Shown: positions 41,255 to 50,520, counted from the first letter of the stretch. The stretch: 64,000 bases of DNA from Octopus sinensis (GCF_006345805.1 NC_042999.1:66712001-66776000), one strand, 5' to 3'. Program-made: numbers and translations. The notes: generated from the letters alone by a model not told the origin.

Positions 41255-41451
41255 TTATTTTGGATATGGACAAGCCTTGGCACACTTTACATACTGGTAT
41301 AATATTCCTCTGCGGAAATATGTATAATAGCAATTATATCGACATTTGCAGTGCTCCTCTCGATAACACTTCTCCATAGAATTATAAGAAAGAGCAATAT
41401 CCTTGCTCTTAAGCTCAGCCTTGCAATCATATCGACATGCCAGTTCACCGG
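41255..41451 (-). CDS. CRP4 orphan mature-peptide exon; (A)GELACRYDCKAELKSKDIALSYNSMEKCYREEHCKCRYNCYYTYFRRGILYQYVKCAKACPYPK*
   Basis: Intact acceptor ctaattttAG (41453-41452), phase 1, 8 Cys, TAA at 41257-41255. Flanks 40740-41645 are an inverted copy of the CRP5 flanks. No signal exon found before the gap. Confidence 0.75.
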
Positions 41452-43488
41452 CTAAAATTAGAAAATGCGAAAAGTCATTAAATAGCATTTTATGATATTT
41501 AAAAACGAATTTAAAGATACATTGCATCTTACTACATTCATTAGATTCATCTCTTTCTTTAAACCTGCTTTACGCTGTTTCTACTACACAGGTCAACGTT
41601 CAACGTGTCCACCGTTTAAAACAATTTACTCTCAACGCATATCACACATACATACTCTCAACTATATCACACATACATATATATGGTGGTTACATAAGAT
41701 TTCGTTATTGCAATAAATTTGACATGCAGCTGTTTCCAGTAGCTATCATAAGAAACAGCTCTAAGTCAAATTTACTAAAACAAAGAAAAATTATGCAGTG
41801 ACAATTAACTCTCATATATATATATATATATATATATATATATATATATATATATATATATATATTATATATATATATATGATATATAGTTCTAATCCAG
41901 AAACGCGTCCGTAACTAACCGTAGACTTTGTTTTCTTTATTTTTCCTTCTGTTTTACATATGTGAGTCACATGTATATGTTGTATGTGGAGTCATACTTG
42001 TAGAAAATTGAAATAAGCGGTCTTTGACTGGTGTTTTTAATTCTTCGGTATGTGACTAAGCAACCTTTTACTTGCCCTTTTGTATATATATATATATATA
42101 CATATATAAGCAAAGATGCAAGTTCTAAACCCTCTCCAGAGAATCACGTACTAGTTGTACTGCCAAGTAATATTCGTAGCCTCTTCAACATGAGTAAACG
42201 TTCGAACGAATTCTACTGCAATATTTTAACCCGAAGAGGACATCTACTCTATCTGGTTAACGATGATGCAGAGCTGAATCTGATAAATTGCAAGCAGAGG
42301 AGCTACCACATTCTAGTGTCTCGACGAGTAGACCACACTTGGTTTCGGGGTATTTCTGTCATCCTTCAGAACTGGACAACTTGTCTGCTAAAGATGGCAG
42401 TAGCTCGCCTATGCTTGCAGTATATATATATATATATATATATATATATATATATATATATATATTCAAGCGAACCCACAGTCGCTGTGTCCCTTGAAAT
42501 TTTACGTTACCATGGTGGACAGGTGAGTTTTAGCTTCACTACTATTATAATGTAAATCTTTTTGAACTCATAATATTCTGTACGTGTATACCAATATTTA
42601 CTGAACGTTTTTAATAATTCCTTCTGGAAATTATCTTGAGAATGTATAATATATTTGTTGTAATCTTTTGTGCCCATTATTTCAATGAGCTTGTTAAACT
42701 TTTTTATATTCTCAACATGCTCTTGTCACCAAAGAATGTACATTTATATGGATTGTAGTACTCTGTGTCAACCAATATTCTGTGCATGTTTGAATATACA
42801 GATACAATACCAATACCAATATCAATTCCTTCTGGAAACTATCTTAAGCATGTCCTTGAGAATGATTATTTATGTAGTAATCTTTTGTGCCCAATATTTT
42901 AAGGAACTTGTTGAACTTTTTTATGTCCTTAACATGTCCCTGTTACCAAAGATTGTATATATGTAATGTAGCAATTTGTAACACCAATAATTAACGCAAC
43001 CAAACTTCTACATGTTACTTTTGACAATCTTTTTCCAAAGAGTGAAACCGGTAAAGTAAATAAACATCTTTTAAATTACATTTTCAAACCTTCTTTCGTA
43101 TATAATTCCACTCGTGCGGTACCCTACAACGCCACTTTGTTATATATATACATCATGATTTAGAGTCTTCTCCAACACAACTTCGTTTTATAGACAGTTA
43201 CTCTATATCCAATTGACTACTCCTAATGTATTCTTTCCTCTCTGACGTTAAGGGATACATATGGTAATACTTATGATCATACCTAGCCATGAGCTGTCAA
43301 CTCAACTCACTCTTACCTTTATTCTAAACAGACACAGTCCTCCAGTCAAAGATGTAGTAGTTGATAAAGAGATAAATGAATTAGAAATAAATCACAATCC
43401 TCTACAAGCTACGACCCTAATGGACTTCATGCGATTCTTGGAAGGGAAGGCTATTCTTAGCTACAATAGCTATATATATATAGATATA

Positions 43489-43577
43489 TGTGTGTGTGTG
43501 TGTGTGTGTGTGTGTGTGTGTGTGTGTGTGTGTGTGTGTGTGTGTGTGTGTGTGTGTGTGTGTGTGTGTGTGTGTGT
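43489..43577. repeat. (TG)n microsatellite
   Basis: Directly visible. Confidence 0.97.
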
Positions 43578-44788
43578 AGGCAATGAAAATCCTGGTATGA
43601 AAATTTAGGAGCATCCAGCACCTGTTCATGACAAATATTCTCTTGAAAAATTCCAAAAATTATAAAAAGAATATAGTATTTGCAGATTGCCATGTTCAGT
43701 ATATAGCCTTATTTTTCACAATTACGTCAATCGCTTTCAAATGTATTCATTCAGCATAGTTTGCAGAAGAATATACGGAAAATGAAAACTGTGATCAATA
43801 GAAGTTAATTTGGCTGATGGTAATTTCAGTTTCTTCACTTTAAGAAATGGGAAACGTTTTAGAAGACTTTGACTTCAAACAAATTCATCTGAAAAATTTA
43901 TCAATGATTGCAACAATCATTTACTGCTTTTAATATGGCAGGCAAATGTAAACTCTCAGTACATTGGAGAAAGCGGTATGATATTGATGTGATAAGTGAC
44001 TAGCTTCTAAACAAAAGCTAAGAATAATAAAGCTGATGGTGTTTGGGAAAATTTCGATCAAAATATATTTCTGGTCCTTTTTTATTATTTACTTATGCTT
44101 TTTATTACATTTTTTAAAAATGTAAATTCATATGTATTGAATTGTCTTAAGTTAAACCATTTCAGCCTCATTTTTAGTAGTACTAGAATGTAAAATATTA
44201 ACGTAAATATAATTAATTATATTAATAACAGAAGCGTTGTCACAAAGACACTAGAATTAAAAGAGCTGTAACTGAGCCTGGAAAAGTACAGGAAAAGAGG
44301 AAAGAAATCTTCAAAATCTAAAATATCAATAACTGCCCTGAAATATTTTTTTAAATTTTTACAGAAAAGTTTATATTAAAATACTCAAGAAGCTATTTAC
44401 TTTCAATTTTAGTGCAGACTAACTACCCGAAATTTATACAGCAACATTTCAGTATTACAAATTTAGTGCAGTATACATTTTACAAATCACATAATAGTAA
44501 TTTAAGTAAAATTGATTATGTATTAAAAACCCTACATTCTGATGTTCCTTTTTTAAAGGATAAAGTGCCATATGTACATTTTGTACTCTACTTGTTTCTT
44601 GGCTTGCAGTTATTAAAATATATTCCTGACGGTAGACACTGTGTTATCTGAAACTGAAATCGCGATGAGATAATTTGTATCTTGGAAAACTTATATTTAC
44701 TACTTTTTTAGACTAAATTTTGAATTACATATCTTATAAATATACATGTACTATAAATATTTAAAACTGATATGTTAACGTAAATTCA

Positions 44789-47966: not shown

Positions 47967-48380
47967 TTCATTCTTCCTATCTTCACATCTATTTATATCT
48001 ATCTATCTCTCTATATATCTTACTGCTTGTCTCCGTCTGTCTCTATATATCTATCTTTGTATCTATTTGTCTATCTATCTATCTTCATCCATCATTTTCT
48101 TTAGTCATTAGACTGCGATCCTGGCAGTTTAACACGAACAGTTTGCCCACACTATTGAGCATCGTACTAACTACTTCTTTTAGGTAAGTTTAATGTTTCT
48201 GGATATTATGTATATATATATATATATATATATATATATATATATATATATATATATATATATATATATATATATATATATATATATATATATATATATA
48301 TATATGCATATAAATATACATATATATGTGGACATATACATACAATATATGTTGGTATTTATAAATTTTACAGGTTCAAC

Positions 48381-48444
48381 ATGAATTCTACACTTTCTCT
48401 CATCTTCTTCTTGGGAATATACATGATGATTGCCCTGACCGAAG
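48381..48444 (+). CDS. CRP5 signal-peptide exon ([22 protein letters not shown]); spliced product 85 aa
   Basis: ATG at 48381, hydrophobic core, donor GAAG|GTAAG at 48444/48445 (phase 1). Confidence 0.88.
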
Positions 48445-50326
48445 GTAAGAAAACTGGTCACCCATTCGTTAAATGATTTTTCGACCTTTGTCTATTTGCG
48501 CATGCAAATCTAGTTTTAGTGCAGACTTTTCATAACTGTCTAGAATCAATTTTCCTGAGAATTACAATTCATATATTATGCTTTCTTAAAAATTTCCCTA
48601 TATATGGGATTCATTTTATAGATAAGATATATCTTAATATAATCCTTAATCAATCCCTTCAGTTCAGTTTGTTCCCTTCACTCTTATTGCTTCCTTTTCA
48701 TGTCTGCTTCAAAAGACCACATCTCAATATTCACTTCGAGCAATTTCATCTCACCAATAATATTCCATTCGACGAAATTCCTTAGCTCTATCCTTTCATT
48801 GGTCCGAATCACACAATTACCGATTGTTCCTTTAGGTTGGACTTAGTTCTCCATAAGTGCGATTGTGATTATCACACGGCTATGTAAATACCACATTTGG
48901 AACTAAACATAACACTGAAACACATAATAAACGCAATCGCACACATACATTACACATACGCTCACACGACATACACCACACAAGTATACTAAGCAAAAAT
49001 TCTTCTTTTATTAAAACTCTTAATGCAACACGGAACCAAAATCTGCCTCTTCTGATTAAATGCAGATGAATGTTGGTTGCGGTGCCCTTTTCATGACTCT
49101 CAAAACCCGTCGTTCATTGCTACATTGAGCGTTATTCATTTTGTCTTTACTGGAATGCGTAACGAATAATCGATTATTACAGGCCAAGATTCCATTGCCA
49201 ATTGCAGTATCACATATATGATGGAAACCAAAATAAAGAATAAGTTTTTTTCATGATTTTCAGCATTTCCTCATTCTCAGAGACTATTTCCAAAGATATA
49301 ATCACTGGAAACTCTTATTCTAAGAAGAAACACATTCCCTCTTATACACAATTGAAAACATATCAGTCCAATATCAAAAACGATGTAATGCATTTTATAA
49401 GAATGCTTAATCATTTCCTTCAGTAGAAACCTCAAGAACGCTGTCCTATCTTTCAAACAGTTCTAAACAAATCTCATGAAATCACTGAGTACCATACATT
49501 TGTAACGTTTGTCGATATTACTATCAAGAAGCATGACCTATCTCACTGACATCATCCTAATAAGTGTCATCAGTATGATCTCTCTTTTACAGATTCAATC
49601 CTTCTCTTAACCTATTTATTCAATATTTCGTTATTTGAGCTGCTACTCTCTAGAATACACTTTACATTTTAGTTTTCTCAGAATCGTGAAAATTTGGAAT
49701 GTCCTATTTGAGATACCGAGTCTGTGTAGATGTACATTAAGAACGTCTCTTCCACCTGTATTATCACCGTCACTTAAAACATAACGTTCTATGAAAATCA
49801 TCAATTGGTTTTTCTAATATATTGATCACTGTCGTTGAAAGTGAGTAAATATTTTCGCAGGAGTAAACGTCTCGCATTTTTATTTTAAATAAAAGCGATG
49901 GTGTCTCTATTACAGCAATATCATGTTGAGTGTAAATCGCTTCATGGAATTCATCCAAATTGTCAAATAATTTAGAGCACTTAAATACATGAAAAACAGA
50001 ACAATTAAAATCATAGCAGTCAAATCAACTAATTTTGTGTCGTCTACAATAAAGATAAAAGTAGGAAGTTCAAACGACAAATTGGTATGGGTAATAGGTG
50101 ACACAATAATGGAGTTATTTAGGATATTATAGAGAGATATATGCGTTGAGAGTAAATTGTTTTAAACGGTGGACACGTTGAACGTTGACCTGCGCAGTAG
50201 AAACAGCGTAAAGCAGGTTTAAAGAAAGAGATGAATCTAATGAATGTAGTAAGATGCAATGTATCTTTAAATTCGTTTTTAAATATAAAATGCTATTTAA
50301 TGACTTTTCGTATTTTCTAATTTTAG

Positions 50327-50520
50327 CCGGTGAAGTGGCATGTCGATATGATTGCCAGCCTGAGCTTACGAGCAAGAATATTGCTCTTACTTATGAATCT
50401 ATGGAGAAGTGTCGTCGAGAGCACTGCAAATGTCGATATAATTGCTATTATAAATATTTCCTCAGACGAATGATATACCACTATGTAAAGTGTGCCAGGG
50501 CTTGTCCAGATCCAAAATAA
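50327..50520 (+). CDS. CRP5 mature-peptide exon; (A)GEVACRYDCQPELTSKNIALTYESMEKCRREHCKCRYNCYYKYFLRRMIYHYVKCARACPDPK*
   Basis: Acceptor ttttctaattttAG (50325-50326), phase 1, 8 Cys, TAA at 50518-50520, AATAAA at 50516 and 50751. Confidence 0.88.

Follow-up and report, generated by a model that had tools for sequence, protein, structure and literature searches.

Does the exon for the mature part of a small octopus peptide change fast because selection drives it, or does it only appear fast beside non-coding DNA that changes slowly? This question is raised by two related exons, CRP4 and CRP5, in a 64,000-nucleotide stretch of Octopus sinensis (GCF_006345805.1, NC_042999.1:66712001-66776000), which is called the window here. 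The window is animal DNA, rich in AT and microsatellites. Judged from its sequence, it probably carries a portion of an Octopus-restricted and hitherto unannotated multigene cluster for small, putatively secreted peptides. In the genes of the family, a phase-1 intron of 1.9 kb separates a signal exon (ATG, 21 codons and 1 nt) from a single exon for the entire mature peptide, which has 63-64 residues with 8 Cys in the CRP4, CRP5 and CRP6 type. Diversifying selection on the mature exon of this octopus-restricted, Cys-rich family is the answer towards which we lean. It is probable and not proven, and the statistics are suggestive rather than decisive.

The segments of the CRP4-CRP5 comparison and the coding parts of the CRP5 gene are as follows (a slash marks an exon border).
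41255..41451, minus strand: CRP4 mature exon, phase 1, 64 residues plus the stop codon at 41255-41257, 8 Cys and one extra GAG codon, from translation and alignment
41452..41642, minus strand: retained 3' end of the CRP4 intron with the acceptor ttttag/CC intact; the homology with CRP5 and CRP6 ends here
40710..41254, minus strand: CRP4 3' flank, homologous to the 3' untranslated region (UTR) and downstream DNA of CRP5 and CRP6, with AATAAA at 41019-41024
48374..48444, plus strand: CRP5 signal-peptide exon, ATG at 48381, 21 codons plus 1 nt, donor G/gtaag
48445..50326, plus strand: CRP5 phase-1 intron, 1.9 kb
50327..50520, plus strand: CRP5 mature exon, 63 residues plus stop codon, 8 Cys
50521..51069, plus strand: CRP5 3' UTR and flank, homologous to the CRP4 flank, with AATAAA at 50751-50756

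Exact alignment of the two mature exons gave 18 substitutions in 16 codons over 194 aligned nt (9.3%), together with one in-frame GAG in CRP4. All of the 18 substitutions are non-synonymous (Nei-Gojobori: Sd=0, Nd=18, S=36.8, N=152.2; dN=0.129), and the 8 Cys codons are identical letter for letter. One codon reads CTC, CAC and CGC (L, H and R) in CRP5, CRP6 and CRP4, respectively. The initial annotation, which had been made by eye, had given the same 18 differences in 16 codons plus GAG, all of them replacements around untouched Cys codons, as well as the L/H/R codon. These counts were reproduced, and the correct alignment brought no synonymous change between CRP4 and CRP5 to light. The retained intron differs by 3 substitutions in 188 nt (1.6%) and one 3-nt indel, again in agreement with the earlier figure. 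The 3' flank differs at 29 of 545 nt (5.3%), and all flank (intron and 3' side together) at 32 of 733 nt (4.4%). For the pair, Fisher's test gave p=0.026 for non-synonymous versus synonymous sites, p=0.011 for the exon versus all flank and p=0.0008 for non-synonymous sites versus all flank. Random mutation was simulated with a flank-derived spectrum. The probability that 18 random mutations include no synonymous one was 0.020, 0.010 and 0.007 at kappa 1, 2 and 3, so that the value of 0.006 in the initial annotation was of the right order and slightly optimistic. The chance that 18 mutations hit neither a Cys codon nor create a stop codon was ~0.03. By itself, the CRP4-CRP5 pair is nominally significant and not overwhelming.

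The comparison was extended to seven close copies from two genomes, namely CRP4, CRP5 and CRP6 from the window and ov4, ovX, ov5a and ov5b from Octopus vulgaris (locus OX597816.1:70170356-70269349; L001, L002 and L003). The additional copies and the assembly gap that lies between CRP4 and CRP5 are listed below.
58583..58653, plus strand: CRP6 signal exon, ATG at 58590, in a tandem duplicate of the CRP5 unit
60542..60735, plus strand: CRP6 mature exon, 2 nt from CRP5, both changes non-synonymous (Q/K, L/H)
44789..44888, no strand: assembly gap of 100 N, the sole N run of the window; ~16.4 kb at this place in O. vulgaris
O. vulgaris locus 9200-9262 (signal exon) and 7097-7290 (mature exon), minus strand: ovX, within the 16.4 kb opposite the gap
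O. vulgaris locus, from 15193 (signal exon) and 17144-17337 (mature exon), plus strand: ov5a, within the 16.4 kb opposite the gap

The ortholog of CRP4 is ov4, 1 nt apart in the exon (D/Y). CRP5 and CRP6 differ by 2 non-synonymous and 0 synonymous changes, and these two differ from ov5a and ov5b by 4-7 non-synonymous and 0 synonymous changes. Parsimony over the seven copies assigned 31.5 non-synonymous and 3.5 synonymous changes, the synonymous ones all on the ovX branch. The non-synonymous and synonymous counts were 5.3 and 0 on the CRP4 stem, 8.3 and 0 on the CRP5-type stem and 8 and 0 on the recent branches. Because both the CRP4 and the CRP5-type branches have changed, the pattern is not the decay of a single copy. 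The six-copy tree without ovX holds 21 non-synonymous changes and no synonymous one (P ~0.005-0.01). Over the tree as a whole, synonymous sites (3/37) and flank (62/728) change at equal rates. Therefore, a joint MG94xHKY model was fitted in which flank and synonymous sites form one neutral process. This model, which presumes that the flanks are neutral and share the history of the exon, gave an omega of 2.9 (about 1.8-4.4) for the seven copies, with a likelihood ratio test (LRT) value of 20.1 and p=7e-6. Without ovX the omega was 2.3 (p=0.0024). Along the whole gene, ovX differs from CRP5 at 1/61 sites in the signal exon, 72/1872 (3.8%) in the intron, 25/194 in the mature exon and 48/887 in the 3' flank, and exon 2 is the sole divergence peak of this alignment. 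The signal exon shows 0/64 differences across CRP5, CRP6, ov5a and ov5b.

Within the mature peptide the changes are not spread evenly. At least three amino-acid states occur at seven codons among these very close copies, and the variable positions are chiefly residues 10-29 and 42-57. The stretch between these, residues 30-41 (REHCKCRYNCYY), does not vary, and its core is retained even in the distant members CRP1 and ov7. All 8 Cys are invariant in 9/9 copies, CRP1 and ov7 included. The accelerated mature exon on a fixed Cys scaffold, first noted in the window, thus recurs in the further O. vulgaris copies; its strength had been overstated. In the mechanism that we propose, the mature exon would gain amino-acid replacements after duplication at ~2-3 times the rate of change seen in flank, intron and synonymous sites. 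These replacements would cluster in residues 10-29 and 42-57 and spare the signal exon, the eight Cys and the central helix EHCKCRYNCYY. The likeliest cause would be positive selection that acts on the surface residues of a peptide with an extracellular binding role, for which host defence, saliva or venom, and a reproductive or pheromone signal are candidate roles. The changing external target named in the initial annotation is a conjecture drawn by analogy.

The alternative that survives best, which we hold to be rather unlikely, is that a young, dispensable family evolves in a relaxed or nearly neutral way (omega ~1). Under it, the nearby non-coding DNA (splice region, 3' UTR, poly(A) block) would have been converted or constrained, and the absence of synonymous CRP4-CRP5 differences would be a small-sample accident. 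The following observations weigh against diversifying selection and, as far as they concern divergence, speak for near-neutral change. The 29 differences of the 3' flank are split into 10, 0 and 19 over the proximal ~330 nt, a middle 160-nt block and the distal ~210 nt, and the unevenness of the flank as a whole is significant (chi-square p=5e-5). The distal part (9.0%) is about as diverged as the exon (9.3%), and non-synonymous sites (11.8%) do not differ from it significantly (Fisher p=0.39). Constraint or homogenisation may have acted on the intron stub (1.6%) and on the 160-nt block (0%), and the flanks are a non-uniform neutral yardstick. In ovX, dN/dS is ~1.2-1.3, and a dS of ~0.09-0.12 against an intron divergence of 3.8% hints that its non-coding DNA has been homogenised. 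A 'TG' intron variant common to ov4 and ovX hints at local gene conversion in non-coding DNA. A binomial test on the seven-copy counts (31.5:3.5) gave p ~0.09-0.16. The formal dN/dS estimate that had been proposed as a check is significant in its flank-calibrated form only; the exon-only Goldman-Yang model for the seven sequences gave an omega of 1.83, with p=0.32 in the LRT against omega=1, and falls short of significance because the ovX lineage has 3-4 synonymous changes. The sample is small and comes from two very close genomes (0.65% apart). Last, CRP4 lacks its own promoter and signal exon in both genomes, and its expression is putative; the O. vulgaris gene model P0003, a chimeric 46-kb prediction, was rejected as proof of that expression.

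Near-neutral evolution has difficulties of its own. With a true neutral divergence of 9%, CRP4 and CRP5 ought to show ~3.3 synonymous differences, yet they show zero (P ~0.03-0.04). The same difficulty appears in the 21:0 ratio of the six-copy tree. No stop codon or Cys loss is found in any of the seven copies (0/7), conversion tracts would have to end at both exon borders, and the synonymous and flank rates agree over the tree. A mosaic or gene-conversion origin of the ovX exon was also considered and set aside on an informal reading, as its common states are more simply ancestral and form no clear block along the exon. What remains of the earlier contrast is that the exon exceeds synonymous sites, intron and most of the flank. 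The whole flank stands at 4.4% and not at the 2-3% first given, and the contrast vanishes against the distal flank. The ten substitutions counted in the first ~330 nt were correct; the homology had been missed beyond that point to 545 nt, and a similar divergence in the flank, which had been named as a reason to doubt the claim, is found in its distal ~210 nt and not in the whole (p=0.011 against the exon).

The 160-nt block deserves a separate description. It is non-coding and lies around or just past the AATAAA (40860-41020 on the minus strand, 50755-50915 on the plus strand). No fixed difference occurs in it among three paralog lineages in two genomes, and the DNA on either side differs by 6-9%. 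A regulatory or 3'-end element is one candidate explanation, and a tract of gene conversion is another.

The predicted properties of the peptides are as follows. The CRP5-type signal exon encodes a hydrophobic core with a TEA/G end, which looks like a signal peptide on reading of the sequence. The peptides are basic (net charge +5 to +10, isoelectric point 8.8-9.4) and rich in Tyr. CRP4 and CRP5 both have a net charge of +6, although 10 events have altered the charge between them; this constancy is not significant (P ~0.25). An AlphaFold2 model built from a six-sequence alignment had a predicted local distance difference test score (pLDDT) of 88 and shows four helices, at residues 10-15, 22-32, 34-44 and 49-58. 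The variable residues were placed on this model at the level of helices only. Foldseek with the model found nothing in the PDB, and its viral matches were noise with E above 3. CRP5 matched no Pfam family at E up to 10, and a sequence profile search of the PDB at E up to 10 gave no match. Protein searches and an exhaustive profile search (5.8e9 proteins; 1.84e9 representatives) returned only three 'hypothetical' O. vulgaris models, and so the wider family could not be sampled for dN/dS. By these searches, the family is restricted to octopus. In the literature on the family, the sequence motif and octopus Cys-rich or salivary peptides, nothing relevant was found; a cephalopod venom preprint concerns large unrelated proteins.

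A more far-reaching proposal is that these genes encode a structurally new, cephalopod-specific class of four-disulfide helical secreted peptides that combines positive selection with an exon cassette. We consider it unlikely at present. In the cassette, one ovX-type promoter and signal exon would be alternatively spliced to the mature exon of either ovX or CRP4, an arrangement that is just as doubtful. If true, it would give the octopus two fast-diverging effectors (venom, immune or pheromone) per transcription unit.

CRP4 is incomplete. Its homology with CRP5 is confined to 933 nt, made up of the exon with 188 nt of intron on one side and 545 nt of 3' flank on the other (self-BLAST, 40710-41642 vs 51069-50139, 93.6%). 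Searching with tblastn found no signal exon of its own between 41451 and 44788, nor was one found in the 4.3-kb ov4-ovX interval of O. vulgaris. Since the homology is restricted to 933 nt and no signal exon lies upstream, CRP4 is a partial duplicate that carries the mature exon only, a feature that escaped the initial annotation. CRP4 would be functional only when spliced to the signal exon of a neighbour, which in O. vulgaris is ovX. If it is used, CRP4 is most plausibly an alternative terminal exon of an ovX-type gene that is concealed by the window gap. The gene model P0003 does splice the ovX signal exon to the ov4 exon. It then continues through a cryptic donor (TAT/GTAAAG) within that exon to a low-complexity N/E/K-rich exon (window 13671-13862) and to the CRP1 exon, read out of frame. 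P0003 is thus a chimeric run-on, and its splice from signal exon to ov4 is suggestive only.

The donor-like GTAAAG, which encodes Val-Lys before Cys7 of the mature exon, was traced in all of the close copies. In the window it lies at 41288-41293 (minus strand), 50485-50490 (plus strand) and 60700-60705 (plus strand). It is present in CRP4, ov4, CRP5 and CRP6; ovX has GCAAAG, and ov5a and ov5b have GAAAAG. In P0003 it serves as the splice donor.

From the same facts it could be argued that CRP4 was dead on arrival, an exon with neither promoter nor signal exon, and that the differences from CRP5 mix its decay with ordinary CRP5 change. This explanation, which partly overlaps the others, is improbable in our judgement. 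The short homology, the lack of a signal exon within 3.3 kb upstream in the window or 4.3 kb in O. vulgaris and the chimeric state of the sole supporting gene model favour it. On the other hand, the reading frame, the acceptor, the poly(A) signal and all 8 Cys of CRP4 are intact in both genomes, and its sole indel is in frame. The CRP4 stem holds fewer changes than the CRP5-type stem (5.3 vs 8.3), so that decay of CRP4 would explain a minority of the differences. CRP4 and ov4 differ by 1 change in the exon and 8/754 in the flank, which is uninformative and gives no sign of quicker decay. P0003 does use the CRP4-type acceptor.

A mis-join or collapse of haplotypes or contigs near the gap, by which alleles or misplaced sequence would have been compared, is very improbable and largely refuted already: the 100-N gap does abut the start of a 10-kb tandem unit and both contig ends adjoin repeated family units, but the gap-free O. 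vulgaris locus agrees in its genes, in their order and orientation and in the lineage-specific exon differences, and CRP4 and CRP5, which are inverted relative to each other, differ by 6.4% over 933 nt against 0.65% between the genomes.

The gap itself, in that setting of repeats, would fit a repeat-induced assembly break. It is situated in non-coding sequence, at a distance of 3.3 kb from the CRP4 exon, and the CRP5 signal exon lies 3.5 kb downstream of it. As it is outside the compared segments (40710-41642 and 50139-51069), the reading frame is unaffected and the counts are independent of it. To its left, window 38679-44788 corresponds to positions 1-6102 of the O. vulgaris locus on chromosome OX597816.1 with 0.65% substitutions; to its right, the window from 44889 on corresponds to the locus from 22479 on (98% identity), so that the two sides are discontinuous. 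The chromosome-level O. vulgaris order is ov4 (-), ovX (-), ov5a (+) and ov5b (+), which means that two more paralogs, unseen in the initial annotation, stand at the gap position and that CRP4 and CRP5 should not be assumed to be adjacent. CRP5 and CRP6 are both nearer ov5b than ov5a. Therefore, the window genome may hold three plus-strand copies, one of them within the gap.

At least four mature exons lie in the window and at least six in 99 kb of O. vulgaris, clustered as tandem and inverted duplicates. CRP5 and CRP6 belong to a 10.2-kb tandem duplication (44889-52523 vs 55207-62745, 96% identity including indels), and the spacing of the matching O. vulgaris pair is 10.65 kb. The cluster may have grown by tandem duplication of ~10-kb units, as in CRP5 and CRP6, together with inverted and partial duplication, as in the 0.93-kb piece of CRP4 with the mature exon only. 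Every full gene would also have an additional short 5' exon ahead of the signal-peptide exon. Two further features of the family are the following.
47910..47960, plus strand: CRP5 putative promoter, TATA box TATATAAG at 47910, and putative short 5' non-coding exon to 47960 (followed by gtaagt)
4639..4808, minus strand: mature exon of CRP1, a distant member with 56 residues and 8 Cys, with the EHCKCRY.CY core in common; its signal exon is at 7179-7242

Within the short 5' exon proposed for CRP5, which would be non-coding, an upstream ATG stands at 47944-47960 (ATGAAGAAGCACTTACTG, followed by gt), in another frame than the signal-peptide ATG at 48381. In the annotation of O. vulgaris, the homologous upstream ATG was taken as a start codon, and the N-terminus of model P0002 is encoded by the exon homologous to the putative 5' exon of CRP5. 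Each of the three O. vulgaris models of the family (P0001-P0003) is either a chimera or incorrect at its 5' end. P0003 joins exons of three family members over 46 kb, and P0002 begins at the promoter and signal exon of ov5b, read out of frame, and terminates in ov7.

Two more sequences like the signal exon occur on the minus strand at 22412-22474 (MNSTFFLTILGIYMTIPLTEA) and 29905-29988 (NSTSFQLILRIYVMSALTK), with no recognisable mature exon downstream. The same two stand at collinear positions in O. vulgaris, and they are probably remnants of dead family members. The other features of the window are repeats. A 353-aa open reading frame at 35557-36618 (minus strand) has a zf-RVT domain (PF13966, E=3e-8) and is a fragment of a non-LTR (long terminal repeat) retrotransposon. 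Repeated, GC-richer elements are found at 44889-46020 and 54000-56300. Unrelated young repeats comprise a 1-kb inverted pair (8007-9046 vs 15383-14368, 94%) and a 350-nt tandem pair (18169-18515 vs 18615-18960, 98.6%).

Many lineage-restricted octopus genes are of unassigned role, and this cluster is a testable candidate for an effector family in defence, saliva or venom, or chemical communication. If positive selection is confirmed, it would provide a cephalopod case of a conserved leader with a hypervariable disulfide-rich peptide, and natural variants for target finding. The analysis also flags an annotation problem, in which short two-exon tandem genes are fused into chimeric models, and an assembly problem, in which a gap conceals two paralogs, judging by O. 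vulgaris.

Among small secreted peptides that are helical and cross-linked by disulfides, the Cs-alpha/alpha hairpin toxins, the plant alpha-hairpinins, con-ikot-ikot and Aplysia attractin have a C-x3-C helix joined to a second C-x3-C helix and act as ligands or toxins. Membership of the octopus peptides in this group is unsupported, as they have four predicted helices and 8 Cys and neither Foldseek nor sequence search gave a match in the PDB.

The vertebrate beta- and alpha-defensin clusters (PMC4018336, PMC3161384) are alike in encoding the signal on one exon and the whole cationic, Cys-rich mature peptide on another, with tandem and inverted duplicates within one cluster. They are also alike in the conserved signal exon, the non-synonymous excess in the mature exon after duplication (a probable one in the octopus family) and the positive net charge maintained through many charge-changing replacements. 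Unlike defensins, the octopus family is octopus-restricted, has no sequence or Pfam similarity to them, arranges its 8 Cys as C-x3-C ... C-x4-C-x-C-x3-C ... C-x3-C and is predicted to be all-helical and not beta-sheet. Homology with beta-defensins, which have six Cys and a three-stranded beta-sheet, was accordingly rejected, given the 8 Cys, the all-helical model and the lack of a Pfam or PDB match.

The conotoxin superfamilies (PMC3862624) are likewise secreted mollusc peptides in which the signal is conserved, the Cys framework fixed and the mature region hypervariable, and in them too the mature peptide is on its own exon after a long intron, an exon that outpaces the adjacent intron. The octopus family differs in having no evident propeptide exon or region and a longer (63 aa), predicted helical mature peptide with no sequence relationship, and the statistical signal is far weaker here than in the classic conotoxin cases. 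Conotoxin homology was rejected, since all matches are from O. vulgaris, no Pfam family is hit and the mature peptide follows the signal directly. MgCRP-I and myticin-C of Mytilus (PMC4558851, PMC3164099), whose function is unknown or defence-related, are similar as lineage-restricted, multicopy families of short secreted Cys-rich peptides with a conserved leader, a hypervariable mature peptide and invariant Cys. They differ in having six (MgCRP-I) or eight Cys with other spacings, a pre-pro organisation and no detectable homology with the octopus family. By analogy, the process would be of the same class as in defensins, conotoxins and MgCRP-I/myticin-C. Evolution in this pattern is well known; the gene family, like the fold predicted for it, seems to be undescribed.

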